This document shows positions 1 to 20,341 of a DNA stretch of 64,000 nt, piece by piece (position 1 is the stretch's first letter; every line of letters starts with the position of its first letter). The notes beneath the pieces are model-generated. The model was not told the DNA's origin and did not search any database. It worked only from the letters and a program-made list of their open reading frames with translations. A program made the translations under genes and the position numbers. This DNA comes from Magallana gigas (lineage: Eukaryota). The stretch lies in contig NC_088854.1 of NCBI RefSeq assembly GCF_963853765.1, positions 36,952,001 to 37,016,000 on the forward strand. The letters run 5' to 3'.

Positions 1-1430
1 TTGAAGCCGAAGATTCATGGCTTAACCTTAAATCGGATTCATTGAAGAAAAAAAAAATTCTTGTATTTATGAGATCTAACTTCAACTGTTAATGAATCAT
101 ACGATTTCACGATCAATTTCTATACTGCTGCAGTATAAAGCAATAAACAATAAAACTTATTTATAAGCATTTGTACAGTGATTTAAATTGCAGCACCAGT
201 ATAATTTATTAATTGACTTCCATTACCATATACACGTATAAAATAATCTGAAAACCTTTGACCAATCCAAGGCAATGTTCTGGCTCGTTTGTTTCCATAT
301 AGCAACAAAACAGTAAAACATTGTAGGTTTTATTTCTGTGCTAGATTCTAAACCCTATGGTAGACCCTTCTAAACTCTCGCTTGTCACTCACTGATTAAA
401 ACGTGTAACACCTTTGAAAATCTGTATATGCAGTAAAAATTAACCGCACAAAATCAAAATTTTTATAACCCCCCCCCCTCCCGCCCATTTCCCAGCTGTG
501 TTACCTCTCTAATTACTATATAGGTTATAGTGCAAAGCGTACTATATAAATATTTTTAAGACACTTCCCTTCCAAATTGTGTCGCAATTGCTTCTGGTAT
601 GAATAAACTTGGTGCTTCTTCATGGAACACGTAGCTCCCTTCCAAGTTAATATTGAAGTTTATTTAGTAACATTTGAATTGAGAGGTCATTGCATTTGTA
701 TAGCCTATACTGTAAAATGACTTCATGTAAGATTTTACTATTTTTTCTGAATTAGTTTCCAATTTCTATAGATGTCCTTCAATATTGTATCTATGTTACT
801 TTTGAACCCATGCCCAATTTGGATTTCCTTGATCATAAGATTAAAAACTTAAATTTTTTGTGCAAAGGTTGGACGAGGCAAAGATATTTTTCATGCCATT
901 TACTTAAAGCTTCAATTCTTACACATTCATTCAAGCGCTCAATTCCAAACGAATGGCATTTCTCTCAAGATTTTATGGGCTCCAAGGGTCATAATTGAAA
1001 CTTTGACGATTAACAAACTGAAGAAGATATTTTAAATTTTTATATTGAATTTAATTGAAATATGATCTATGAATTCCATGATGAGTCCCTTCTTGGTCAT
1101 CAATATTATACCAGCCGCCATACTTTTAATCCATCCGAACATTTCCTTTTCGTATTTATGTATTCCTCAAAGGCTTGGGGTCTCTGTCCAACAAATTTTA
1201 ACGCCTTTAACAAAGGATTGTTTGAGTTGTATTTTGTTTATAGGAACCTAGTAGTGAAAATTTTGTTTGAAATGTTGATAGACGAGGAAACATTTTTTGG
1301 GGCAACAATTGATTAGAAATAACAGTACTAGTCAAACGGATCATAGCTACTGAAAAAAACCCGGGCAATTCTCTTCAACCCTTCAACCCAATATATGTTA
1401 TATAACGCATTTGATTTTGCTCATTTGTAG

Positions 1431-3500
1431 AGGAAATCCCGTATGTTGCAGTCATTATCATCTTATAAATGGAACTTGCGAGGGTAAGACAGCAATCCTA
1501 TTCTTACCATGATTTATAACATTTTCAGAATAACAAGTAATTAGTGTTTTGTCATAACTAGCAAGTCGAGTTTGAAAGTCTTTCTTTCTTAAAGCAAACT
1601 GCAGTGTAATATACCCTGCTATTCTAATAATATCTGCAAGTTTGCAACGATTAGTGGTAACTAATTAATTCTTGAACATATATTGTTGATCTTTCTTGGC
1701 CCATCTTACAGAATGCTTGGACGGTTATTTTGGGAGATATTGTACACCGTGCGTTTATCCGTCTTATGGATATTTGTGCCGATTTACCTGTACTTGCTTA
1801 CAACACCTATGTCACAACGCACATGGATGTCAAGGTAAGTGATTCACGTGTACAGTCTGTCCAAAGATATTTTTGCAGCATATTGTGGTAATTTTTAATA
1901 AAAATGCTTATATCTGTACAAGAAGAGCAATTGAAATCGATCAAGGGGAAAAATATCCTAGATCCAAAATATCTTTATTGATTCACTATCGTTTTTCAAT
2001 CGAAAAAAATCACAGGAACGAAAACAGATTTCTAACGTCGATTTATAGTGGGGAATGTTAACATCTTTTCTTGATTCCGAAGTCACGCGGAATACCTCGC
2101 ATAATTTCTCAACGTTATCATCCTGGTACTATCATCTCGTTCGCAATGTAAAACCCTTGTAGATTTGTTTTTATTTTTAACCGTGTATTCAAACCTGACA
2201 AGCTAGAGGGGGCGTTTTAGGGATAAATCTTGGGAATTTTTAATGCTATCGAATGAACATCATTAATTTTAACTCAGACAATGTGCTGCATAAATATCTT
2301 GAGACAGACTATAGTAAGAATTTTATGCAGATAAGCAAAACACACCTCTTTCTAAATTTTAAATCAATGGAAAACGGACATTAGATTAAATAAATTCATA
2401 CAATTAGCTGCTGTTAAGATATATTTCAATATATGTGGATGTATTTTATGCTTTTGATACTCTTTGCTGGAGGAATTGAGTAGTTAATGTCTGAGACAAA
2501 GTGCACAAACCAAGTAACCAAAGGATATGCTAAATGCCCAATCAAATCAACTTATGTCCTAACCATTTGTATATGCACAGTACCGATCAGACCCAACCTA
2601 ACAGAAAGTAAACCCCAACTAAACCCTGGGTTTACTTTCTTGGTTTACTAGACTTGTCCCATAGTAAATCTAAAGTAAACACAGAGTTGACACAGAGAGT
2701 AAACCTGGTCAGAAGTATACCGCTGAAAGCAGCCTCTAACTGTGTATTAATATACAAGGGGCAGAAATAAACAGGCAGTAGAATGGTAAGATGAAAGACG
2801 GATCTGCTTCACACTTCAGTGCGTACAGTTGACCTCAAAAGCAATTTCCAAGTAAACCCCGAGTAAACCAAAATTAAACCCCGAGTGGACCCAAATGTTC
2901 AAAAAGTAAACCCAGAAAAAACCCCAAGTAAACCCCTAAAGAAAACACAGGGTTTAGTTGGGGTTTACTCTGGTATTAGGTTGGGTATGAACGGTACTCG
3001 TTTGTATCTTACATATATACAATAGAATATGTTCAGATTAAATCAATGACAATTTCAAATGATAGGTTCTCTAAGACACTTATAAAATGTAGGTTCGTGT
3101 AAATCAGAGCCTACTATTTATTGATGGTATATTTATCTTGTTTTAAAGTTTTTAACATAAATGTCGAAATAGTAGAACACTGAGTACATAGTTGCAATGC
3201 TTGCAGGAGACATTATAATGCAACGTAACTTATAACTGTATATTGACTAAGCATGTATATCCATACTAGTTTATGCTCATCAATATATACACAGAATCAA
3301 CAATGCAGACTACAGCACAGACACCGGAAACTACGAAAACTTCACCCATGATGGCAGAACGGTCTTCCTCAATGCTAACAACCACCACCAAAACGTGGAC
3401 TGCCGCATCGTTCAGTTCTATATACCTGGCTTTGTCGTCAATCAGTACATACAGTTCAAAAGTCAGAGGTAAATTTTATAAAAGAATATTTACTAGGTAG
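1431..3500 (+). CDS. MEGF10/SCARF-like Cys-rich receptor paralog A (5'-partial; TM and cytoplasmic tail absent). Exons 1431-1483, 1712-1834, 3295-3500 (alternative donor after 3468)
   Basis: AG/GT-bounded exons join in frame: [17 protein letters not shown] + [41 protein letters not shown] (EGF-like) + Ser/Thr-rich stalk ESTMQTTAQ..., ending at TAG 3498-3500. Family assignment comes from the Cys spacing pattern. Confidence 0.7.
2581..2996. mobile_element. MITE with about 48-bp imperfect terminal inverted repeats, TA at both termini
   Basis: 5' taccgatcagacccaacctaacagaaagtaaaccccaactaaaccctg vs reverse complement of the 3' end taccgttcatacccaacctaataccagagtaaaccccaactaaaccctg. Internal gtaaaccc repeats. 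Absent from the paralogous intron of copy B. Confidence 0.8.
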
Positions 3501-5299
3501 TAAATAAATAGTAATGAGCACAACTATAAAATATATACAATGAAAAGTAGGGAAAAGTAAAACAATTGAGGAATTACTATCATATTAAGTTTTCTTAAGC
3601 TAACTTAATTTGAAAATAATTCGGTGTATGGAAATAACAAACACATGTATGATTCACTGTTAAATGTTCTAGTCAATGGATAAGAATGGCGGTAAAAAGA
3701 ATAAAATTAGATGTACAAAACGAAAAACAAAGATTCAATATGTAAGTACTTATCATAATAACAGCTATCAAAGAAGAAGTTAATTGCTACGATTGTCAAA
3801 CAACCGTCCGATCAGACCTATACAAACACATGAGATATTTATACAACTATTATACATATGAAGCGTTTTTCATACATGCAAGAGAATATTACATACATGT
3901 ATACAGCTTATAACCATATGTATGTAATTTTAATTTAATCAGAGAAAACTTGACATTGTGAGAATTTTGCCGAACACAAACTTGGATTGTTTTCTATGCC
4001 AATAAATAAGTCTTCTGTATATAAATTTTGGGTATTTGGTTCGGTAACACATCGACCATCTCAATGATGAACGACATCAATTAGACATTATAAACGTCTT
4101 CAGTTAAAATCAAACCGTTCATTTTTTGGGATCGCTGGCTGTTGCTTTAAAAAGTTAGTCCGTACATTTCTTTTCGTAATTGATGCCGTCCGTCATTGAA
4201 TTACTGTTTCGTCTCTGAGCTATTTCGAAAATGTGTTGTGTAAAGTTTTAAAAACTCCTTTTGTCGCCTATGAAAGTTATTGTCGTGAAATCAACAAAAA
4301 AGTAACTCATCAAAATCTACCAAATGTAATTAGACAAATTAACTTTTATAATTTAACTAATTATAAATGTGATTCATTATTTATGTCAAAATTATTGATT
4401 GAAAATGACCATCATGTGAAAAAGCACAAGTCGTTAATGAAGTGAAAGTAATGGCATAATTTTGATGTTGATGGAAATAAATGCTTTTTTGTTTAAAAGA
4501 ATTAACTAAAACTAAAAAGAAAAAGAAAATGTAGTCTCTAAAACTCTTGTGTATGATAGTAAGTAAAAGTGAAACTATCTGTAATATTTTGTAAATAATG
4601 TAATTATGATCTACGCGTTTCTTGTTGTGTAAACGCGAGTAGGGTGTTGAGGAGTACATGTGTATTTGAGAATCCTTGGCATAACATCAATAATAGTTTT
4701 TGAGAAAGCAGCAGGTTTGGCGGTGATTCATGCGATAGATTACGTCATTTGAAGTACGAACTGTCTTTTTGATTTGTATGCAGTTGGTCGATCATTAATG
4801 GTTTTATTTCTCATACAAACATTAACAAGGTGTATTTTTTATCTCTTTTATGTGAAATATTTCCTAAATTTGTTTTTTTTCAGGTGTTTTTATACGTCTT
4901 TGTTATGTATTTGACTAAAAACGATAGTAAGTTATTTTGTGTTGCGTTCTTGTTTTCCTGAAAGCACATGCGTTCTAGTTTTCATACATTTGAGTTATAA
5001 TCATTACATACATGTAGTTATCCTTGTAACTAAGAGTAGTACTTTCAAAATACATGAACATAAAATGAAAGATATTTTCAGGTGGATACATTGATTGAAA
5101 GCATGTGTGGTATTTTTCTCTGCTTTGTATTAGGGAAACTGCCCAACTACATACATTTATGCAATAGGGTTTCCGAGTTCTCACTTTGTTTAAGTTGGAT
5201 AAAAACAAAAGAAGTAAATGTATGAAAAAGATTTCAAATGGCTAGTTTTGGGGGATTGGTGTTAATTAAACATTTCTTGGTTTATCAGAAGCGATTAAA

Positions 5300-5805
5300 T
5301 TCAGGGAGCTCAAATCTGGAGCTCGTCAGCTTCCATTTTAACTAAAGTAAGATTATTCAACAGCCTGGTCCTTTCAGTCTTATTATATGACAGCGATACA
5401 TTAAAACAACAGAGCGGGACAAAAAAAATTAACACCTTTCAGAATGATGCCTAGAAAAATCCTAAGGGTAAGATGGCCAAATATAATTTCAAATGAAGAA
5501 CTTTACATGAGAACAAAAAAAAACTCGAGTAAGCATCATCATACTTATGAGAAAATGGAATTGGATTCGCCATGTTCTAAGATTGCAGAACCACAGAATT
5601 TGTACCACCGCATTGGCATTGCATCCAGAAGGAAAACGGAAAGTAGTCCGACCAAAAACAACATGACGCAGAACCACAGAGCAGGAAAGATCACAGCTGG
5701 AGTGGAATAGCTGGGCGTCAGCGAGGGCAGCAGCCAACGAAAGGGACAGGTGGAGGCAGTGTATCCAGGCCTTATGTACCAGCGGGCACGATGAGGTTAG
5801 GTGAT
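5300..5805 (+). mobile_element. RTE-clade non-LTR retrotransposon, 3' fragment (degenerate ORF2 C-terminus)
   Basis: Translation across frameshifts and a stop: TKVRLFNSLVLSVLLYDSDT...RKILRVRWPNIISNEELYMRTK...RKWNWIRHVLR...PEGKRKVVRPKTT*RRT...DRWRQCIQALCTSGHDE. This is the typical RTE ORF2 C-terminal pattern. Confidence 0.85.
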
Positions 5806-5959
5806 GTAAAACAGATGACTATAATTCCAATGCAACATGTGTCAAACAGTGGAATCTCCTGTATCCGCTTTAAGGGATATTCCATGTATTTCATCTTAAA
5901 CCTGTTACTTTGGTAAAATGGAAAGAGTCAATTTTCAAGATGGTCATTTCTCAATATTT

Positions 5960-6402
5960 ACAGAAAAATTTACTATTCAACCAAAATTTGAATGTCATTC
6001 GTTGACTTATAAACGAGACACAGAGCTAATGCATCTTTTTGGTTTATACAAAGCCCAGGTCATGTTTTTGTTTACAATTTAAATTTTAAAAAGAGAATTC
6101 CAGATTCAGACCTTAAATGAATGTGACAAACGCTATTAACTAGCAAATGGGAAAATCAGCATTAAAAAACTTATTTACTAAAATAACGGTATATTGAACC
6201 ATACGAATGTATACAAAAACATGGCACGAATTCTGTTTACATAACAAAAAGTTGTAAGTTCTGTATCTTGCGTATAATTCTACGACAGACGCTCAAATTT
6301 GGGTTGATCATTATACAAATGCATTAATTAAAAAGGGGTTGTAAACAATGTAAATAGATAAATACAATTTAATAAAAAAAAAATCGCGACCATGCTACTT
6401 TA
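5960..6402. mobile_element. Partial copy of the TTAA-flanked MITE family at 7648-8155
   Basis: Shares aatttgaatgtcattcgttgacttataa with 7750-7780. Ends in aaaatcgcgaccatgctactttaa, similar to the TIR aaaatcgtgaccatgcccctttaa. Confidence 0.6.
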
Positions 6403-6433
6403 AAGATAAGTTGTGCTGACTATTAGAGTAACC

Positions 6434-6500
6434 GGACTGACGGACTGACTGACTGTTTGACTGACGGGGGACTAAAAAACAGTACACCCCTCGCAACTTT
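6434..6500 (+). repeat. GACT/GACG microsatellite plus start of a terminal hairpin; probable Helentron/pearl-type element 3' end
   Basis: ggactgacggactgactgactg...gacgggg followed by acacccctcgcaact, resembling the end of the element at 48171-48616. Confidence 0.45.
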
Positions 6501-7018
6501 TCCAACCCTGCGCTGAGTTTAATTACTCAGAATAAGCTTTCTGATTGATGAGCTGGTCTTGATTTCAACATAAAGGCAATGATCCTATAATGTAACTACA
6601 TGTTTAGGATGCTTTCTCGCTTGTATACAACGGAAATAAGAACCAAACTGCCAGAAAGCTGTCTCATGGGACGTTCAATCTGTCCAATTTGATGTAATTT
6701 TTTTATTGCAAAAACACATTAAAAATCTGTATTAAAGTAGTTTAAAGCGCCCCGCTCTTAGTAAAAGCAAACAAGCTTGATTACCAACAAATAGAGTAAA
6801 CGTAGATAATTTCAACATACGTGTGCATGCCTTTTCTAAATGCATTTACAGGGAAGTTGAACGGTCTTCTATCTGCTTGGCAGCATCAGCTTACGTAAAC
6901 TTCCCATGACCACAAACGGAAATTAAACACATAGTCAACAGAGTATTCAATATTCACTATTGTTCACATCTTTTATTTTTGGGCTGATATACTTAGAGAT
7001 CTAGACTAGATTTCAAAA

Positions 7019-10000
7019 ATGACCGTCAAAATAGGCGTATGTTCTTACAAAAAGTAAGTTCTATATATTTATATTTAAATTCCATTCAAATACGTTAACT
7101 TTCATTTGGGGACTTATAATCCTTTTCAGATTCAAAATGAATATTCATATTCTATAAATAATTATTTGCTTAACCAAATAAACAATTGTGTTCATGAAAT
7201 AGTTTTATAAGGGACAATCCAGATAATTTGTTTTTATCTTACTGTTCTAAAAAAGATTTTAAAGAGTCGTTTTTCATTTTTGTTCCAATTTTGACCTCAA
7301 TGTCGAGCAACTTTAAAACTAATTCGTAGTTCAAGTAATGCTAAGTCGGTCACAATTAAAAGTATCGAAATTGCAATTTTAAATACTACCAAAAAAATAA
7401 TAATTGTATAATAATATAAAAAAAAAATTGAAATTCATGTAGTGATATCAAACAAAAGCATTTAAGAAAAAAAGTAATGAAAATGATTTAAACATATTAT
7501 TCAATTCGAGAAGGTGATGTTTAATTAACTAGTACTGCTCAATGTACAGGAAGTATTGTTTATATTTTCTTTTAGTGATAAGCCTGTGTGCTGCACATAT
7601 TACCATCTAAAAGACGGAATATGTACAGGTAAGAAATAATATCTTAAAGGGGCATGGTCACGATTTTGGTCAAAAATTATTTTTCCAATTTTAATTTTTC
7701 CAATTTTAATGTTTACAATGCTTCATTAAGGCAGTTTTAATAGGCAACCATAATTTGAGTGTCATTCGTTGAGTTATAAGTGAGTTACAGAGTTTGAAAT
7801 TCTTTGCTATGTAAACAAAGCGTTTGTTTACATTTTGAATGTTGAAGTGAAAATTCCTTTTTTAGACATAAAATGAATGTGTTAAACATTAGGAACTGTT
7901 TATGTTGGCTTAAAATGAATAAAAAGATATACAAATCAGATTTTAAACGTTTTTTATTGGTATATTAAACATATGTAAACAAAAACAGGAAACGAGCCTT
8001 GTTTACACAACAAAGAATTGCAAGCCCTGTATCCTGCTTATAACTCTACGAATGACTCTCAAATTTCATTTGATCATTAAAAATGCATTCTTAAAGCATT
8101 TTAAATAATAAAAAACACAAAAATAGAACTTGACCCAAATCGTGACCATGCCCATTTAATTATATACATACATACACCTATCAGCGAAGAGCAAGTGATT
8201 TTGACAGTAAAAGTCCAGGGAGTTTACTATTTTTTCTATACCCGGAGAATTTAACAAGAAAAAAAAAATTAAATCTGACAACTTTTTTTTTCATTCGGAG
8301 ATTCTTGGACCACCACGCTTAATTTTACAACACCGTCACTTGTTACTCTCACGTTGTTTGCAAAACAGATTTCTTGTAAATTTTTTATCTTTCGCCATGT
8401 TTTTTTTAACCTGACAATGGGTGTTTTAAAACACAACCTTTTGTTAACCTTTAAAACATCAAATTCTCACATGATTTCTTGTTCATTACGGATATATTCT
8501 CTTAATTCTTTTACATATCAAGTTTTTGTTGTTCTGATTTGTCTTTTAAAAATTGTTGTCAAATGACAATAAATGCATAATTACAATACCTTTATCTAAT
8601 CAAACTATCCCAAAAGTGTTCAGATCTTTCTTTTTACATACAAAAATGAAAAATGTCCCAAACATTTTTTTAAAAAATACTGGTTTATAAAAGTTCCAGA
8701 AAACCCATATCAATATTTGAAAGCATTTATCGATTTATTCTTCTTAGAACAATGAAATTATGTTTCAAAAATATACTAAATCATTCCTTTTTATCTTATA
8801 AGTACGGTGTCTTATATTGAAACGATTCACAGAGGATTTGAATTTCTACTACACCTTCTTTTGGTGATTCATATGGGCATGGCACTAACGCGGTTTCTGC
8901 AATGATCGTTAGACCTTCACAGCCCGCATAAATCATCAAAGATAGCATTTTTTGTTTATTTTCACATCTTTCTTTCTTAAAACAAATATTGCTTTCAATG
9001 GTCTAGAGAAGGACTTAGATGCATTTTCTATGGTTTGTGTGAACTTTTTGTTAGTTGTGACGTATGAGTAGTCAATGAATGGACAAATTACACTAACCAA
9101 AGGTGATTTTGAATGTCAAATTTAATCAGTAATGATATCTAATTCAGAAAATGTCAGGGATATGTATTGGAAATACAGAAAAGGCAAACAGATATGCTTA
9201 ATCTAGACATGAAACCCATTTTAAAATTTAAGCTATAAAAAAGACTGGTCATATTATTTTATACAAAAACCCAGTAAATGCTTTAAATCGGCATAAATTA
9301 TTATACTGGTATTAAAGAAACGTCACATAAAAAAAATCTATACATTTTCTTTTCTGGCATATACTTTTTTAATTATAATGCTTCAATACAAAGAGTTTAT
9401 TTATCACATTTGTGCATACACAGAATCAACAAATCAGTCTACAGCACAGAAATCTGAACAGTCAGTACAGCCAACGATACTAACAACAATAGCAACAACA
9501 GAACCTCGACTCGTGATGACAAAACGGTCTTCCTCAATGCTAAAAACCAACACCAAAACGGGGACTGCCGGATCGTTCAGTTCTACACACCTGGCTCTGA
9601 CGTCTCTAGAGGCAACTCCAATGCCTGGTTCTACGGGCGTTCCCCCAGAGCATACGTCACAGACGTCTGTCATTATCATCGTCGGAGGTCTAATATGTTC
9701 CTTTCTCATTTTCATACTAGGCATCCAAATCCACAGCAATTTTCTGAAACGGAAAAACGCATCTAGGCGAAAAATTGGTGAAAATCTTTTCAACCTCTAC
9801 GAAATGGAAGATGTCTACAACCACATTGAAGACGGTCATGTCTCAATGACCTCAGATAAGTACGATGTTGTTGCAAATCAGAATGATGCAGAGAGCTCGA
9901 CTTCTTCCAACATCAGTCCAAAATTTGACAAACCTAATAAAAACCTTGCTCCAACCTGCGTTTATTCAAAGACAACAAGGGATGGTAATATTTGTCATAG

Positions 10001-10214
10001 CCCTACCCAGAGCCAAGATAATTTATACATTGATCCAGTAGCCAAACTGTGTAATGGTTACACAGATCTTGTAGCATCACCACCAAGAAATGAAATGCAG
10101 GAAGAGACGGGTGAAAATAATCCAAAGGAAGCTTTTCAGAAAGTGGATTCAAGTCTGGTTAATGAAGAGCAAAACATACAAAAAGACAATTATCTCGATG
10201 TAGTACAACAATAA
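7019..10214 (+). CDS. MEGF10/SCARF-like receptor paralog M (middle copy, lacks EGF exon). Exons 7019-7053, 7576-7628, 9424-10214; true 5' end uncertain
   Basis: In-frame splicing gives MTVKIGVCSYK-N-DKPVCCTYYHLKDGICT-E-STNQSTAQ..., then an S/T stalk, TM VIIIVGGLICSFLIFILGIQI and a Tyr-motif tail ending DNYLDVVQQ. The 53-nt exon has the same length and phase as the corresponding exons in A and B. Confidence 0.7.
7648..8155. mobile_element. Non-autonomous DNA transposon with TTAA target duplication (Kolobok-like)
   Basis: ttaa|aggggcatggtcacgattttggtcaa ... ttgacccaaatcgtgaccatgcccat|ttaa. About 26-bp TIRs, TTAA at 7644-7647 and 8156-8159, purine-purine 5' end as in Kolobok. Confidence 0.8.
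8858..8950. repeat. Degenerate palindromic end of the repeat family at 17078/46809/58918
   Basis: ctttt ggtgattcatatggg...ctaacgcgg...tgcaatgatcg...cccgcataaatcatcaaagatagcatttt matches the palindromic terminus of those copies. Confidence 0.55.
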
Positions 10215-11144
10215 AAACTGACAAAACTTAACAAACAGGACAAAACTGATTATGTAAGCTATTAATTACCAGTAGTTGATAAAATTGGCAGTTCAACATA
10301 CATTTACTTTATGCACACGTCACATCCTTACATGGTGAACTGCTTATTTACTGATAACGGACGATCAGGTACATAATGCTGGATAGGTCACGGAATGCCG
10401 GTATTCGTTGTGATGATCTTTAAATCTTAATTTATGATTCTTATATTCGAAGTTTTCAAATGAGTTTGACTAATTACATGTATATAAATTATAATATTTT
10501 TGTGATAATAAATGGAAACATACTTATTTTGTGCTATTGCTTGATATTATAATAAATGTAAGTTCATGAACTTGTTTTCTTGATTTGTGTATATTTAATC
10601 ATTTTTGGAAAATAAACAAAAATGTCACTATTACAATTATCAACAATCAGAAAATTGGATATTTTAAAAAAAAAACCTGCTTAGCTTATAAAGATGTTCA
10701 TTTACCTTATCAAAACATGCAATAATCAAAGGTGATAGCTCTTCTCAATAAATTGTTTGATATAAGGAATTTCCATGAATTATCCTCAGAAGAAATATTT
10801 TTTTCAATATAATTCATGTACATACAATTATACAAATATCAGCCAATCAAGTTAAAGCGTCCATTTTCTTATGAGGAATTTTTTTTATGTTTTTATGAAA
10901 ATTTTACTGCAACTCTATTGTGATCCTATTATAATTCACAGAGGTTAATTTCATGTTTTTAAACTGGCCATATTTTTTTTTTTTATTCGTTGGAAAGGGA
11001 CTCCGATACACCCCTCTTTAAACAATTATTAATGCAACTTGCTAAGTTAATATATAAGATTTGATGGAAATGAGCGCAAGTGTTTAGAAAAGGTCAAAAT
11101 ATCTTAAAGACGAACAAACGATAGACATAGAGAAAAAATGGATA

Positions 11145-11261
11145 CCTTTTTTTCATATCACAGCCAGTATCAGCCCGATACACCAATATCAGCCCGAGTG
11201 CCGAAGGCCGGAGGTATGATATTAGTCGAGGGCTGATACAAGCTGTGATATCGAAAAAAGG
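11145..11261. repeat. Palindromic repeat element with central gccgaaggc mini-hairpin
   Basis: Arms tttttcatatcacagc..gtatcagccc and gggctgatacaagctgtgatatcgaaaaaa flank cccgagtgccgaaggccggagg. Confidence 0.65.
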
Positions 11262-11627
11262 ATTATTATTATTATTAAATTTATTACAAACTTAATAATA
11301 AATTTTGTTTGAAAACATTAACTTGAACAAATTGATTTTAAATATCATTTAAAAGTAGGTTGTATATGTATTAAATAAAAATATATGATCATATTGTTTT
11401 ACCAAACATGAAGCTACAGTACAAGGATTTCCCCAGGTTTTCAAATTAACTGCTCCAAAATATTTGCTGGTATATTTAGTTTTAAACTGCACTTAAAAAT
11501 GTGGACTGTATCAAATGCCTTTTTTTTCAATGTTGATATGCACAAATGCCGAATCGAAAGAAGGCAGAGGAGTTCTGCAACAAGGGGTGTGATACGAATC
11601 CGTATCAGTCGGAGGCCGATACGAGTT

Positions 11628-11801
11628 NNNNNNNNNNNNNNNNNNNNNNNNNNNNNNNNNNNNNNNNNNNNNNNNNNNNNNNNNNNNNNNNNNNNNNNNN
11701 NNNNNNNNNNNNNNNNNNNNNNNNNNNNNNNNNNNNNNNNNNNNNNNNNNNNNNNNNNNNNNNNNNNNNNNNNNNNNNNNNNNNNNNNNNNNNNNNNNNN
11801 N
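11628..11801. other. Assembly gap (174 N)
   Basis: Run of N characters. Confidence 1.
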
Positions 11802-12092
11802 AAAAGTATAGTACTTCAATCTCCAGTTTAGCTGGACTACAAAAATTATGTAATTAAATCTGTATAATAAATTAATGTCTTAAATACACTTTCTATTGAT
11901 TATGATGTATTTCAAAAACGTTGTATTTTTATACATGCAATCAGGAAATTAGATGGTCTACAACCTGGAAGTATCATCGGCAAAGCAGCTTGTGTGTAAA
12001 AACATTGTCAAGTGCCTGTGTGCATAATTATTGAAATTATTTAATAATAGTACATATAGAATGCATTGATTTAAAATAGTTCCGCATTTCAG

Positions 12093-12241
12093 TAAAAATG
12101 AGCACCAAAAACGGCGTGTGTGGTTACAAAGCGTGAGTTTCATTACTTTATTGCTTATTCATTTTTAACTTTATTCACATTTGTTTACAATAGTTCAGTG
12201 ATTTCACTTAATTTTAAGGAAATAATATTGTATTTGCCGGG

Positions 12242-12331
<90 letters not shown>

Positions 12332-15300
12332 TAGTAATTATATATTGTTTTATGTTTATATTTCAAAGACAGTATGGATAGATATTGTACTTTTCTGTTA
12401 CCATTAAGTGTATATCTTATGCGCAAAACAAAATAATAGCATAATTATGAATACAATGCATGAATACAATGTATTTTAAATGCAAATAATCATGTTTTTA
12501 ATATATTATTGACTTTAAAATCAATTGAAGCCGAAGATTCCTGACTTAACCTTAAATCAGATTCATTGAAAAACTTTCTTGTATTTATAAGATCTAATTC
12601 CAATTGTTAATGAATCATACGATTTCTATACTGCTGCAGTATAAAGCAATAAACTAGAAAACTTATTTATAAGCATTTGTATAGTGATTTAAATTGCAGC
12701 ACGAGGAACTCATATATTAATTGATTCCCATTATCATATACACGTATAAATTAATGTGAAAACCTGTTGGCCAATCCAAGGTAATGTTCTGGTTTGTTTG
12801 TTTCCATATTGCAACAAAACAGTAAAGCATTGTAGGTTTTATTTCTGTGCTAGATTATAAACCCTATTGTAGACCTTGCTAAACTCTCGCTTGTCCTTCA
12901 TTGATAAAAACTTGTAACACCTTTGAAAATCTTTATATCCAGTAAAATTTACCTTCAAAATCAATTTTTTCTTTAAACCCCCCCCCCCGGTCCCTTTCCC
13001 AGCTGTGTTACCTCTCTACTATAGGTTATGGTAAAAATTAAAGAGTACTAAATCAAGATTTTTAAGACCCCCCCCCCCCCAAATTGTATCGTCATTACTT
13101 CTGTTATGAATAAACTTAGTGCTTCTTAATGCTACATGTAGCTCCCTTCCAAGTTAATATTGAAGTTTATTTAGTAACATTTGAATTGATGGGTCATTGC
13201 ATTTATATAGCCTATACTGTAAAATGATTTTACTAATTTTTCTGACAAATAGTAATTCATTTCTATAGACGTCCTTCAATAGTATATCCACGTTACTTTG
13301 AACCCATCCCCTATTTTGATTTCCTTGATCATAAGATTAAACACTTGAATTTTTTTGTGCTTATTATTTTCAGACATCTTCCATTTTGCACTAAAAAAAA
13401 TAAATACAATTCCGCTACCCCCGGTCGTGGCCCTCTGTTCACAAGGTTGGATGATACTATATAAATAGTGCCTGTTTGGGAGGGTAACAGTTGAAATTGA
13501 CACCCCGAGAAAACCATTGTCAACCGACGCGAAGCGGAGGTTGACAATGGTTTTCGAGGGGTGTCAATTTCAACTGTTATCCTCCCAAACAGGCACTATC
13601 TATTTTGTTATACTGAATGTCTTTTTTAAAATTTTTAAGAAAATTTTACTGCTTTTATATAGGAATAACGTGAATTCTACAGCGAACCGTACGCGCATAA
13701 TTTTCGCGCATGTAACATTTTTTAATGTTACCCGTTGCCAAGTGCGTTGCTAACGCTGAGGGTAATAGTAAATATTATTAACTGCGTCTTAACCAATCAG
13801 ATTTCAGTATTTAACATGAAAGTATAACAAAAAGACATGTTTCATGCCATTTACTTAAAGCTTCAATTCTTACATAATCATTCAATCGCTCAGTTCCAAA
13901 AGAATGGCATTTCTCTCAAGATTGTAAGTGCTCCAAGGGTTATAATTGAAACTTTGACGATTAACAGACTGAGCCTCTTTGTTCCTCAGAAGATATTTAA
14001 AAATTTTATATTGAATTTAATTGAAATATGATCTATGAATTCCATGTTGAGTCCCTTCCTGGTCATCAATATTATACCAGCCATACCTTTAATGCATCCG
14101 AACATTTCCTTTTCGTATTTATGTATTCCTCCAAGGCTTGGCGTCTCTGTCAACCAAATTTTAACGCCTTTAACAACGGATTGTTTGAGTTGTTTTGTTG
14201 ATTCGGACCTAGTAGTGAAAATTTTGTTTTAAATGTTGATAGACGAGGAAACATTTTTTGGGGCAACAATTGATTAGAAATAACAGTCAAACGGATCATA
14301 GCTACTGAAATAAACGGGCAATTCTCTTAAACCCTTCAACCCAATAAATGTAAAATAACGCATTTGATTTTGCTCATTTGTAGAGGAAATCCCGTATGTT
14401 GCAGTCATTATCATCTTAAAAATGGAACTTGCGAGGGTAAGACAGCAATCCTATTCTTACCATGATTTATAACATTTTCAGAATAACAAGTAACTAGTGT
14501 CTTGTCATACTATAGTAACTAGCAAGTCGAGTTTGAAAAACTTTCTTTCTTAAAACAAACTGCAGTGTAATATACCCTGCTAAAATTTGCGGATATTCTA
14601 ATAATATCTGCAAGTTAGCAACGATTAGTGGTACTTAATTAATTCTTGAACATATATTGTTGATCTTTCTTGACCACTCTTACAGAATGCTTGGACGGTT
14701 ATTTTGGGAGATATTGCACACCGTGCACCTTTCCGTCTTATGGATATTTGTGCCGATTTACCTGTACTTGCTTACAACACCTATGTCACAACGTGCATGG
14801 ATGTCAAGGTAGGTGATTCACATATACAGTCCCAAGATATTTTTGCAGCATATTGTTGCAATTTTTATTAAAAATGCTTATATCTGTAAAAGAAGAGCAA
14901 TTGAAATCGATCAAAAGGAAAAATATCCTAGATCCAAAATATCTTTATTGATACATAATATCGTTTTTTCAATCGAAAAAAACAGATTTCTTACGTAGAT
15001 TTACAGTGGGAAATGTTGACATCTTTTCTCGATACCGAAGTCACACGGAATACATGTACCTCGCACAATTTCTCAACGTTATCACCTGGGTACTATCATC
15101 TCGCTTGCAATGTAAAATCCCCGTAGACGTTTTATTTTCAACCTGACAAGCTAGATTGAGCGTTTCATACATTAATCTTGGGATTTTTTCATGCTATCGA
15201 ATGAATTACTTTTGATATATGGTATATTTACCTTCTTTGAAAGTTTTTAACAAATATGCCGAAATAGTAGAACACTGAATATACACAGGTGCAATGCTTG

Positions 15301-16215
15301 CGGGAAACATTATGATATAACATAACTTTTTACTGTATATTGACTAAGCATGTATATTTTTACTAGTATATGCACATCTATATAAACACAGAATCAACAA
15401 TGCAGACTACAGCACAGACATCGGAACAGTCAATACAGTCAACGATAAGTTCTACAACAGAAACTACAAAAACTCGACACATGATGGCAGAACGATCTTC
15501 CTCAGTGCTAAAAGCCACCACAAAAACGTGGACTGCCGCATCGCTCAGTTCTACATACCTGGCTCTACCGTCTCTAGAGGCAACTCGGATGCCTGGTTCT
15601 ACGGGCGTTCCCCCAGATCATACGTCACAGACGTCCGTCATAATTATCGTCGGAAGTCTTGTATGTTTTTTTCTCGTTTTGATAATAGGCATTCAACTTC
15701 ATAGCAAGTGTCAGAAACAAAAGAGCGTATCGGAGCGCAAAAAAGGAAGGAATAACGCAAGTCTTTATGATATTGCAGACATTTACGACGAAATAGAAGA
15801 CGAACATGTTTCCACAGTGACAAAAAAGTACGAAATTATTGCAAACCGAAGCGAGCCAAATTACAGAAGTCCAAAACGTATCGACACTGATGCAAGTTTT
15901 GTTCCAACTTGTTCAAGTTCTAATTTGTACTTAGACGTTGCAAAAGATGGCTGTCCTGAAATTCCTGATTCGCTGCAGAATAGCTGTGAACCTCTAACTC
16001 AACCTGAATCATCCTCATTTGATGATTCAAGTCAAAATGAATGTGAACCTGTTCATGAGTCTAACTCTTCGCCGGCTGAGATATACCCACAGAGCCCTGG
16101 CGATACAGGCTATCTAGAACCTATGCGGCCAATAGACACAAAATCAGGCATTTCTGACACTCTACCTGACCATTCATCATCGTATTCGACATATTTAGAT
16201 GTAGTATTTAAGTGA
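12093..16215 (+). CDS. MEGF10/SCARF-like receptor paralog B (most complete). Exons about 12093-12132, 14384-14436, 14686-14808, 15392-16215; signal-peptide exon not identified
   Basis: In-frame splicing gives [80 protein letters not shown]..., then [23 protein letters not shown] and a tail with [27 protein letters not shown]. The donors and the three downstream acceptors are canonical; the first acceptor is uncertain. Confidence 0.8.
12244..12330. repeat. (TA)n microsatellite
   Basis: About 43 uninterrupted AT units. Confidence 0.98.
13454..13827. mobile_element. Insertion with a 135-bp near-perfect palindrome (13465-13599); non-autonomous element, possibly Crypton-like
   Basis: atagtgcctgtttgggagggtaacagttgaaattgacaccccgagaaaaccattgtcaacc-gacgcgaagcggag-gttgacaatggttttcgaggggtgtcaatttcaactgttatcctcccaaacaggcactat. 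Absent at the paralogous site in copy 1 (about 875). The superfamily is a guess. Confidence 0.7.
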
Positions 16216-17077
16216 CGTGAGAAGTGTTATATTCTCCATTACCAAGTCAAAGAACGATTCTTATTACTTATATTTACATTACAGTATTGATCAAATAATT
16301 CATCATGGTTAAATTAACCGAATTTTTACGTTAATTCCATTATGTGTAATTATGCAAACCCCCTTGTGCCCCACCAGTGTACGTCACTAAACACATCATG
16401 TTTCCATGTCGTGCAAACTGTGTATAACCATGTTGTAGCGCAAAACAATCACCTGGTGCTATTAAAAACGCCCAGTTCAGGCCACATGTCAATTATCGTG
16501 CAAGTTTTATCACCTACATAAACACTGGAAAATATTAATATTCTAGTTTTAATATGGTTTAAAAAGAGCAGGTCAAAATTGAAAATCGTGCATAATATAT
16601 CTATGCCAATAATTTGAATGCATGAACATTAGTTAATGCACAGTTTCCTTAAAGTCCATTTATGTCATATGAAAGTACATTGCTAAAAAAAATATATAAC
16701 CACTTTGCTTTTAGTGTTTCTTACAAGACAGATGGGGTATAAAAATTTTAAAAATATCTCATGGGAAAGTTACATTTGCTAAAGGGGAAATAATTTTCCT
16801 GTAGAATATCTCTAAATCAATATCTGAACTCCCCAACAGGTTTGCAATGCATTTATTTCTAACAGGTAGTTTTTCTAAAGGAAATTTAATTTCATACTTG
16901 GTTTTCAATTCCATTTGAATTGTTTTCGAATTTTACAGCTATGAAGTACTAGTAATTTAATCTCGTATAAAAACATATCATATTGGAAAATCACATTTTA
17001 GGGAATTATTTACCTACTGGATTTTTATTGGTAAAGATTAATATTCCACAAGACAAATGAAAAAAGTAGTTGTTTAA

Positions 17078-17655
17078 ACTTCTTTGGTGATTCATGTGGG
17101 ATATGAAGACATTGCAAAAAAATGCATAACAAAAGTTAGCGGGTTATGTAAATATTTTCCTTCAATGATCGCTACCTTCATATAGTCCGCATGAATCGTC
17201 AAAGATAGCACTTTATTAATTATATTTATGTGTTCCTTGCAAATTATTAATTTTATCATAAAAAGTAGGTAAAAGTATGTAAATTATTGTTGATGTACAT
17301 CAGTACGTTGAAAGAAATAGCCAAGTATTTGATTCTGGCATCATCATGATTAATTCGTGCAGTCCGTGATTTTCTTTCATGGCTACTAAAGGTTTCGACC
17401 AATCGATAAAAAGGTTAGAACTGGATCGCGTATATTTCAGCCCTTTTAGTTTCTATAGCGCTGTAAATTACAATCGATCTGTTTGAGAAATGTAGGATAA
17501 AATATATAGTGAGTGTAAATATTTTAACAACAAAATGGCCATTTGGTGTTTTATGCTGGATATGGACCTTGCGGATTTCAGTCCTGTCAGTTTCTATATA
17601 GAGCTGTGAATTACAATTAATTTCCGTAAGAAATAGAGGGAATCATACTTAATGG
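17078..17655 (-). repeat. Dispersed repeat (inverted copy of the family at 46809-47236 and 58918-59215)
   Basis: Reverse complement of ctaccaagtattattccctctatttctt at about 17630-17655; gtcctgtcagtttc; palindromic end ggtgattcatgtggg...ttagcgggttatg...cgcatgaatcgtcaaag. Confidence 0.75.
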
Positions 17656-18128
17656 ATGTTCATGTAAATATGAAATAATAAACTCTTACCACAATTTTAA
17701 CCTATTTGATTTTTACACATTTGATTTTCTTAGGAACTGCTCGTTTAACGGGTGCCAAAAATACCACCTTAGTGCTGAGCCGCTGACATAATTATTCGGC
17801 TGTGTTGTGTGCAAACTAATCGAATCAAGCATGCTAATTATTGAATGTTAATTTGTGTATTTCAAAATGTTCTTTTTAGGTTTCGTAAGTTAACCTAATT
17901 TGGAAATAATTTAGTATTTGGAAATGACAAATGTGACTTACTGTTAAATGTTCTAGCTCATGGATAAGAATGGCGGTAAAAGAATAAAATAAAATGTACA
18001 AAACGAAAAGGAAAGAATCATTATGTAAGTAGTTATCATCGTGACAGGTATAAAGGAAATTAATTGATATTACATACCTGACTACTGTATGCAGCTAGTA
18101 ACCATATGTATGTAATTTTAATTTAATC

Positions 18129-18454
18129 AGTCCAATCCACACTTTGCAAAAGTTGTTTCCCTTTGCAGGCTCAACCCAAAGGTTAAAAGAGAAAAAACAA
18201 CTTTTTCCTTCTTTATGCAACAGAGTATTTGGGCGTCCTGTGATGAAATCGTTTGGAACTTAATTTATTCATTCAATATGTGTGTTGCCCCATCCTCGGG
18301 CAATCAAAATACAGACGGGAAACGGATTTTTAATGTCAAATGACAAAGTTATAAACCTATAAACTACATAGGCTACTGTGAGAAATCTATGGGGGGTTTT
18401 TTCCCAAAGATGGCGGCCAAAGGGTCATAACTTATGTAAAGTGGGGATTGGTCT
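18129..18454. mobile_element. MITE inserted in duplication copy 2
   Basis: TIRs agtccaatccacacttt / aaagtggggattggtct. The paralogous site in copy 1 (about 3940-3950) lacks it. Confidence 0.7.
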
Positions 18455-20341
18455 TATAGACATTGTGAAAAATTGACGAACACATTTTAACTTGATTGTT
18501 TTCAATGCCAAAGAATAAGTCTGTTGTGTATTTTTGGTATTTGGTAACAAGAAGAAAAGCACATCGACTATCTCAATGATGAACGACATCAATTACATTA
18601 TGAACGTCTTCCATTAAAATCAAACCGTTCATTGTTTGGGATCGCTGGCTCTTGCTTTGAAATTCAGTCTGTAAATCTCTTTTCGTAATTGATGCCGTCC
18701 ATTATTGAATTATCCCACTCACTGTTTCGTCTCTTACCTATTTCGAAAATGTGTTCTGCGGTAAAGCGTAAAGTTTTAAAAACTTCTTTTGTCGCCCATG
18801 AAAGTAACTCATCAAAATCTACCAAATCTAATTAGACAAGTTAACTTTACATGCTTAATTAATTTGCTCACATGGTCTTAATTAGATGTGATTCATTATC
18901 TATGTCAAAATGATTAATTGAAAATGACCATCATGTGAAAAAGCACAAGTCGTTAATGAAGTGAAAGTAATTGCATCATTTTGATGTTAATGGAAATGAA
19001 TGCTTTTTGTTTTGTTTAAAAGAATCATTGATAACTAAATGAGAAAAAGAAATTGTAGCTCTAAAACGCCGGTGTATGATAGTCAGTAAAAATAAAAACT
19101 ATCTGTAATATTTGTACATAATGTAATAATTATTATGATCTACTCGTATCTTGTTATGTAAACAAGAGTAGAGTGTTGTGGAGTACATGTGTATTTGAGA
19201 ATCCTTGACATCACGCCTGTGTACAATATACATGTACATGTACGTCACATAATTGTTCTATCTTGTACACTTTATTACCATAGCAACCTCTTTAAATTGC
19301 GCTAATCTTTTTTTTTCATTAATCCATGGTTTATCTTGACCCTATCGAGTCTATTTTAGATTCTTCAATGTCCTTTCATAGACAAATATTTCTTCCTTGT
19401 AAATGTAAGCAAGTATTAAACAAAATTGATCGTATACATTAAGTAGCCTCTCCAATGTTATTTGTGTACAACAACATTCCGATTTAACAGAACCTTTTAA
19501 CAATATTGTATAATAATGGAGTACTTTGTTTAGACTGCTTGTCTAAAAACAAATAACGAACGTTCATATAAGCTCTGTGGCAACGTAATGTGAAAAAATT
19601 ACTCATTTATGTATAAACAAGTTGCTGTCCTTTAAAAAAGGACTGCAATACGTGGACCATTTGCATGTGTTTTCAACGAAGACGTGAAAGCCTTAAAATT
19701 ATCACAGATTCTACCAACTCTAGCCCCCTGCTTTTAACTACTAAATTTGTACGTTGTATTATGTATATGTATAGTTGACTTTTAATCTCAGAATTTAAAA
19801 GGTTCATACTTCTAAAATAATTATGATCTATGTTAATGAAGATTGCATGTATAGTATAAGGCATTCGGCGAATTCTACTATTTGCGCACATTACGCTTCG
19901 CACTACCTTTGTTAACTTTGCAGTGACAGCTTTGTGTAAATCATTTCATATTTTGATGCATTTTTCTTGAGATTTAAACTTTAATACAGTGACAAAAATT
20001 TATTATATACAGTCACATAATTATTCACTCATACTTAAATGCTTAAATAATTTTAATCGGGAAGTACTCTAGCCTCGCCTTCTATAAAAGTAAAATTCAG
20101 CTATAGTGTATTCAGAAAATAACAAAACATTGCAAATTATGCTATTTGATGCATGTTGTAGTTTCGGCATAACCTTAACTTATTTCATAATACTGACAGT
20201 TTATATCACATGCCAATCATTTCTTTAAAAGGAATACTTTGTTTCTGTTTACCGACAACTTTACAATAGTACAGCGCCTTTGAACTTACATACATGTGCA
20301 TATGGCATGGAATCCCGATCCCGATTCAGATAAAACTGTGC

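Follow-up and report, generated by a model that had tools for sequence, protein, structure and literature searches.

A transcribed tandem paralog in an oyster candidate receptor cluster ends in a fragment of a long interspersed nuclear element

The epidermal growth factor (EGF) ectodomain of pro-neuregulin-1 is translocated without a signal peptide, its transmembrane (TM) segment serving as an internal signal. Under the positive-inside rule, a Lys/Arg-rich stretch that follows a TM segment directs insertion with the N-terminus out, so that the TM acts as a reverse signal-anchor. Here we analyze a stretch of chromosome C2 of the Pacific oyster, Magallana (Crassostrea) gigas, that is 64,000 nucleotides (nt) long (G000:C2:36952001-37016000; hereafter the window, in which position 1 is the first letter and negative positions lie upstream), and in particular a gene, paralog A, whose last exon lacks the TM segment present in its sister gene, paralog B. 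A second described system bears on how A came to be: human L1, a long interspersed nuclear element (LINE), can insert independently of its endonuclease at a double-strand break with deletion of the target (Sen et al. 2007, PMC1920257), and from that study we took the features by which such an insertion is recognized, namely 3' truncation, no tail, no target-site duplication (TSD) and a target deletion. We conclude, with a probability of roughly 0.6, that A is a transcribed, LINE-truncated tandem duplicate and most likely an ordinary decaying copy.

Self-comparison of the region shows that a two-gene unit has been tandemly duplicated to give the order [M'-A][M-B], and the comparison of A with B rests on the following features.

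-330 to -296 (G000:C2:36951670-36951704), plus strand: A exon 1, with the ATG, 35 nt, identical to B exon 1.
1431-1483, plus strand: A exon 2, 53 nt, canonical AG/GT borders.
1712-1834, plus strand: A exon 3, 123 nt, phase 1-1, one EGF-like Cys-rich module with every Cys kept.
3295-3468, plus strand: A exon 4 as a spliced cassette, 174 nt, phase 1-1; a contig of the public run X1 spans 3294-3468.
12098-16215, plus strand: B, a RefSeq model, XP_034303357.2 (P0029), 344 amino acids (aa).
12098-12132, plus strand: B exon 1 in the same RefSeq model.
15392-16215, plus strand: coding part of the B terminal exon, with stalk, TM (about 15636-15704), Tyr-motif tail and stop (16213-16215).
15570-17874, plus strand: B segment of about 2.3 kb without counterpart in A (self-BLAST and MAFFT), holding the TM, tail, stop and 3' untranslated region (UTR).

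In the RefSeq model the B protein is built from exon 1, exon 2, one EGF-like exon and a stalk-TM-tail exon. Exon 1 of A falls 296-330 bp 5' of the window start, and splice sites are canonical throughout the A exons. A placement of B exon 1 at 13904, ATGGCATTTCTCTCAAGATT followed by GTAAGT, under which A would lack the donor, was dismissed, as the RefSeq model puts this exon at 12098-12132, where it is intact in A. Within A exon 4, positions 3295-3436 encode a mucin-like stalk equivalent to B 15392-15569, and the last 30 nt or so derive from a LINE. A 3112-3431 is 86-88% identical to B 15207-15564 by self-BLAST and MAFFT; by eye the match extends to 3436-3439, and it is back at A 3585, which corresponds to B 17875. 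The original prediction, made from the letters of the window, had the stalk match end near 3431 and resume near 3590 versus 17890, with about 2.3 kb of B that holds the TM and tail absent from A, and each of these statements is borne out. A search for TM or tail homology across 3600-9400 returned none, so the TM has not been relocated. Like a duplicated pseudogene, A is thus a paralog of a functional gene minus an essential part, the TM, tail and stop of B; no stops or frameshifts are present in what remains.

One further difference lies in the stalk, where reference A is without 36 nt (12 codons) at 3329/3330 that are present in both B and M. An RNA contig of run X5 that is otherwise at least 95% like A has 33 extra letters at this point, and the stalk indel seems to be polymorphic and in-frame.

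The deletion is not an assembly artefact, a possibility that the original prediction had allowed for: it is present, filler included, on ten contigs from ten samples, colinear with 2926-4680. The exon 4 open reading frame (ORF) matches one database protein, P0008, which is 96% identical and carried by ten contigs. Because the flanks on the deletion-bearing contigs match the reference at only about 93% identity, the truncation is common to well-diverged haplotypes; it is old and present in many individuals. Two Logan contigs (L034 and L035, encoding P0028 and P0027, respectively) encode an intact TM-bearing gene and were considered as an intact allele of A; they were rejected in that role, as they are about 90% from both A and B, an equidistance measured over the stalk and the intron end. 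The gene on these contigs is probably another gene or from another species, and may represent the ortholog, or the form before duplication, in a different Crassostrea species.

The roughly 150 bp of A that have no match in B are a piece of a dispersed LINE, taken from its 3'UTR, an origin that is new in this analysis. The fragment and the features it contributes are as follows.

3437-3588, minus strand: antisense LINE 3'UTR fragment that fills the 2.3 kb deletion, without the last 45-58 nt or so of the LINE and without its repeat tail.
3469-3500, plus strand: continuation of the ORF by read-through into LINE sequence, with GT at 3469-3470, ending ...KVRGKFYKRIFTR at TAG 3498-3500, which is followed by TAA.
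3503-3508, plus strand: AATAAA, a candidate LINE-derived poly(A) signal, kept in every haplotype seen.

A genome-wide DNA search with 3425-3590 as the query located 3437-3588 in at least 40 copies, at 79-86% identity. When twelve of the copies are aligned, flanks included, what A has proves to be no more than an internal part of a longer element. The longer copies have one common end, preceded by (TTCAA)n, break off variably on the other side, and on the opposite strand contain an ORF of 620 aa in which a reverse-transcriptase domain is recognized (PF00078, E=1e-39); together, these properties identify the element as a LINE lying antisense to A. At the left junction the B-type and LINE sequences share a 3-nt microhomology, GTC, and no TSD or direct repeat is evident around the fragment. 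Measured against the features described for endonuclease-independent insertion, the fragment stops about 45-58 nt short of the common end, has neither a (TTCAA)n tail nor a TSD, and sits where 2.3 kb are missing relative to B. A two-step history, in which a 5'-truncated insertion in the 3' flank was followed by a deletion that cut into the LINE, would fit equally well. Recombination between two copies of a transposable element (TE) is out as a cause of the deletion, the repeat being a LINE fragment truncated at both ends with no copy in B.

Everything that gives A the appearance of a complete 3' end lies within this fragment. The donor after 3468 (CAGAG/GTAAAT), the stop at 3498-3500 and the AATAAA at 3503-3508 all come from the LINE and are kept across diverged haplotypes; at the donor position the LINE consensus reads GTACAT and A reads GTAAAT. 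The final codons, the stop and the candidate poly(A) signal are therefore TE-derived, and transcript contigs covering 3299-3519 and 3439-3597 include the LINE sequence. No poly(A) reads were seen; the AATAAA probably serves as the poly(A) signal. The original prediction was right that the AG/GTAAAT donor after 3468 bounds a symmetric 174-nt phase-1 exon and that the frame read past it stops at 3500.

Transcription was examined in public sequencing runs, nineteen of which contain at least half of the sampled words of 3295-3600; three of these are recorded as RNA. The contigs of X1, X5 and X7, together with the raw reads of the poly(A) run X20, were compared with 1650-7649, an interval that covers A exons 3 and 4 and M exons 1 and 2 (the M acceptor at 9424 lies outside it), and the runs examined were selected for containing A. 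Logan contigs, for their part, cannot display RNA ends. A is transcribed and spliced. The exon 3-exon 4 junction from 1834 to 3295, with GT..AG ends, is present in two RNA runs from separate studies, X5 and X7, and contigs that read past the donor and through 3469-3500 cover 3299-3519 in X7, 3439-3544 in X5 and 3439-3597 in X1. An untranscribed pseudogene, which the original prediction had kept in view, does not agree with these contigs. The donor is also seen in use: a unitig of X1 ends exactly there (3294-3468, depth 11.5), and the read-through branch has a depth of 5.7. No reads fell on A exon 4 in a sample of about 1% of X20. A joint in X1 from 7628 to 3349 was discarded as M mRNA mis-assigned to A, as it has the letters of M at 3379, 3385 and 3396.

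Where the donor leads can be followed into M, the gene downstream of A, whose features are listed here with those of its upstream copy.

-5355 to -2187: M', the upstream paralog, which is followed by A.
7019-10214, plus strand: M, which is followed by B; XP_034303358.2 (P0009), 292 aa, EGF exon absent.
6988-7053, plus strand: M exon 1, ATG at 7019, beginning MTVKIGVCSYK; seen in the RNA-derived contig L001, with the joint from 7053 to 7576 found in the runs examined.
7576-7628, plus strand: M exon 2, whose acceptor is joined to the A donor (3468 to 7576); 100% identical to M' exon 2.
9424-10214, plus strand: M terminal exon, with stalk, TM, tail and stop (10212-10214); its acceptor is the one to which the original prediction joined A in frame.

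According to contig L001, M consists of three exons (6988-7053, 7576-7628 and 9424 onward), with an in-frame TAG 12 nt 5' of the ATG. A junction from 3468 to M exon 2 at 7576, with GT..AG ends, is found in one X5 contig at a depth of 2.25; its short side is 28 letters, below the guide value of 30-31 letters, and the 30 nt on its A side are LINE sequence that differs by only about 2 letters from other LINE copies. Here a phase-1 end meets a phase-2 exon, and the frame reads V-ISLCAAHITI up to a TAA stop at 7608-7610, within 11 codons. The original prediction that A splices into M is thus correct as to the donor and the target gene, but the acceptor observed belongs to exon 2, and the frame is lost. 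Compared with the 9424 acceptor, that of M exon 2 lies closer to the A donor and follows a much stronger pyrimidine tract, which accounts for its capture of the donor.

The predicted products bear directly on function. Neither the read-through product nor that of the junction to 7576 has a TM, and at their N-termini A, B and M lack both a signal peptide and any hydrophobic stretch (KD9 maximum 0.3-1.3). In B and M the sole hydrophobic segment is the TM (KD19 3.0-3.3), which is followed by a Lys/Arg-rich stretch; A exon 4 reaches a KD19 maximum of only 0.83. B and M would accordingly be read as type III proteins (N-terminus out, signal-anchor) with a Cys-rich/EGF ectodomain of 110-150 aa. With the TM as the only targeting signal of the family, a TM-less A should not enter the secretory pathway, and its protein most likely stays in the cytosol, without receptor or decoy function. 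A secreted decoy, one of the two alternatives in the original prediction, is therefore unlikely: A keeps its EGF-like exon and the greater part of the stalk intact, and their junctions are present in RNA, but once the TM is gone no signal for targeting to the endoplasmic reticulum is left. The protein collection has no spliced A or A-M protein called on any contig, and word searches for spliced A proteins gave nothing but genomic read-through ORFs (P0008, P0053 and P0054).

Taken together, these results suggest the following history. The two-gene unit would first have been tandemly duplicated, and A then truncated. In the truncation, about 2.3 kb of its last exon and 3' flank would have been lost, with a 150-bp internal piece of an antisense LINE 3'UTR left instead, either through repair of a double-strand break by LINE capture or through one deletion into a LINE copy inserted earlier. 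With promoter, exon 1 and splice sites intact, transcription and splicing go on. The LINE piece now supplies the last 21 codons and the stop, the AATAAA where transcripts probably end, and the GTAAAT donor, which occasionally splices read-through transcripts out of frame into M exon 2. Lacking both a signal peptide and the TM, the product would probably be cytosolic.

Evidence for constraint on A is mixed. The exon 4 ORF, LINE tail included, has 6 variable sites of 206, compared to 74 of 866 in the flanks (Fisher p=0.005), which makes it about three times less variable, and it has no indels among four haplotypes, although the contigs carrying these haplotypes were found via an intact ORF and some ascertainment bias applies to the comparison. 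Exon 3, compared with another haplotype, has 5 differences in 123 sites, which equals the intron rate (34/834). Non-synonymous and synonymous changes in the stalk number 5 and 3 on the A lineage and 3 and 3 on that of B, with no difference between A and B. These data hint that exon 4 is conserved and exon 3 is not. The 5' end and exon 1 of A are 94-100% identical to B and the remainder 84-89%; this identity is probably due to gene conversion, which would keep the A promoter working.

Several of these observations weigh against A being an ordinary decaying copy. The ORF is intact in all four exons, every Cys is kept, and the sole indel, of 36 nt, is in-frame; exon 4 is less variable than its flanks; about half of the X1 exon 4 depth exits at 3468 toward a partner that is not listed; the depth of A exon 4 is of the same order as that of M in the runs examined, albeit runs selected for A; and the type III topology from which a cytosolic location would follow is itself a prediction. 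The intact ORF, the conserved exon 4 with its stop, donor and AATAAA, and the transcripts that read through to 3519-3597 would all suit a functional gene for a soluble EGF-plus-stalk decoy or modulator of the B and M receptors, selected with its LINE-derived C-terminus and poly(A) site. This is nevertheless improbable. There is no signal peptide, and exon 4 falls far below the hydrophobicity of the family's TMs, so that classical secretion is not expected; the EGF module itself varies at a neutral rate, the stalk has changed on the A lineage much as on that of B, and neither a called protein in the collection nor a read in the 1% sample of X20 speaks for a spliced A product.

Somewhat less credible again is that the product of the locus is an RNA, either a circle built from A exon 4 and M exon 2 or read-through transcription driven by A, with interference at M or a supply of M-type transcripts (in the order M' exon 2, A exon 4, M exon 2) as its effect. 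In addition to the forward joint from 3468 to 7576, X5 has one contig with a backward joint from 7628 to 3295 at a depth of 2.52, and the similar depths and exact exon borders of the two are what a circle would give; low-depth contigs over the A-M spacer in X1 and X5 would likewise agree with read-through RNA. However, each joint is a single low-depth contig in one run, the forward one having its short side below the guide length and its A side in LINE sequence shared by other copies, and the thin spacer coverage may equally be DNA carry-over. Furthermore, as M' exon 2 and M exon 2 are identical, the backward joint is ambiguous: a linear splice of M' exon 2 onto A exon 4 would explain it as well as the closing of a circle that contains A exon 4 and M exon 2. 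A broader proposal, that the LINE-capped exon 4 is a selected, frame-neutral exon of the tandem array, placed behind M' exon 2 or A exon 3 and ahead of the M exons to give TM-less isoforms, double-stalk receptors or circular RNA, is doubtful to the same degree. The least likely of all is the fusion receptor of the original prediction, in which exon 4 (174 nt, phase 1-1) joins 9424 to produce an A-M protein with a doubled stalk: the donor is real and used, part of the X1 depth leaves by it for a partner not listed, and computation confirms that this join would keep the frame (G+AA=Glu, then STNQ...), but the sole junction seen from 3468 within the interval compared (1650-7649) goes out of frame to the nearer M exon 2 with its much stronger pyrimidine tract and gives no such receptor, and no protein of the expected length (about 350-390 aa) was found in a protein search over a length window of 150-478 aa or among those 15 members of the M cluster that were listed.

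The family to which these genes belong is specific to oysters and molluscs and would consist of small single-pass membrane proteins, candidate receptors. In the predicted layout a Cys-rich N-terminal part, followed in some members by one EGF-like module, leads into a mucin stalk, then the TM and a tail with Tyr motifs. Neither B nor M reaches the cut-off of any Pfam family; the sole match of the EGF exon is the stabilin EGF model EGF_STAB1-2, at E=0.015 and under the cut-off. In an Atlas feature search B sits among clusters of mollusc "hypothetical protein" entries (0.94-0.95), and the MEGF10-like clusters score only 0.82-0.86, a lead rather than a membership. A literature search with the LOC and UniProt identifiers of the loci found no mention of them. 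More distant members of the family lie at -9299 to -8131 (L002), upstream of M', and at G000:C2:40629008-40629685, 3.7 Mb off. M' itself (LOC117681733, P0010) is modelled by RefSeq as a protein of 232 aa that starts from an internal Met of the last exon, and exons 1 and 2 identical or near-identical to those of M exist upstream of that start.

The duplicated unit is a mosaic. M' and M, the spacer, and exon 1 of A and B are 94-100% identical (-5400 to -14 versus 7000 to 12507), and 3' of window positions 1 and 12525, respectively, identity drops to 79-89% (1-4500 versus 12525-19012); the pattern suggests gene conversion or a nested younger duplication, with a sharp border. Mobile or repeated sequence is found elsewhere in the two genes and in the window.

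2577-2998, no strand assigned: miniature inverted-repeat transposable element (MITE), 422 bp, with terminal inverted repeats of about 72 bp, in A intron 3 within an A-only insertion (2258-3111).

This element has more than 100 genomic copies and a very high depth among the contigs of the RNA runs. In B intron 1, a near-perfect palindrome of about 130 nt (about 13470-13600) lies within a B-only insertion (13360-13830) and is probably a MITE or foldback element. A run of N occupies 11628-11801.

The A locus illustrates how a LINE-associated deletion can trim a tandem receptor paralog and yet leave what looks, in raw sequence, like a clean "soluble isoform". The very features that make A look designed, its stop, poly(A) signal and donor, are transposon-derived, and in a family without signal peptides the loss of a TM is not readable as a switch to secretion. 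For oyster biology, the result would be one more transcribed, truncated member, with some cross-paralog splicing, in an uncharacterised lineage-specific receptor cluster.

Among known systems, transcribed unprocessed pseudogenes and truncated paralogs are similar to A in their tandem origin from a functional parent, here of the B type, with TM and tail lost, and in keeping promoter and introns along with modest transcription. They differ in that the four exons of A have no stop, frameshift or lost splice site, and exon 4 is less variable than its flanks. TE exonization and TE-derived polyadenylation are comparable in that the last 21 codons, stop, AATAAA and donor of A lie in an antisense LINE 3'UTR piece present in transcripts; the TE piece in A is, however, the filler at a 2.3 kb deletion and not an insertion into an intact gene, and its poly(A) use is deduced. 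The A-M joint follows the usual pattern of conjoined read-through transcripts, from the donor in the last exon of an upstream gene to exon 2 of a downstream gene on the same strand, but its donor is TE-derived, the join is out of frame with a stop within 11 codons, and it was seen once at low depth. At the protein level, MEGF10, Draper and PEAR1 are unlike B and M, which have no EMI or repeated laminin- or PEAR1-type EGF domains reaching the Pfam cut-off. Proteins of the pro-neuregulin-1 type are closer: B and M likewise carry an N-terminal ectodomain of Cys-rich/EGF character, do without a signal peptide and have a single TM with basic residues just behind it, a likeness of layout in which the oyster topology is the predicted one. 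Finally, although the element is an oyster LINE rather than human L1 and the state before insertion is known from paralog B and not from an orthologous empty site, A shares with endonuclease-independent LINE insertions (PMC1920257) the truncation of both ends, the missing tail, the lack of an evident TSD, the microhomology and the loss of target sequence.

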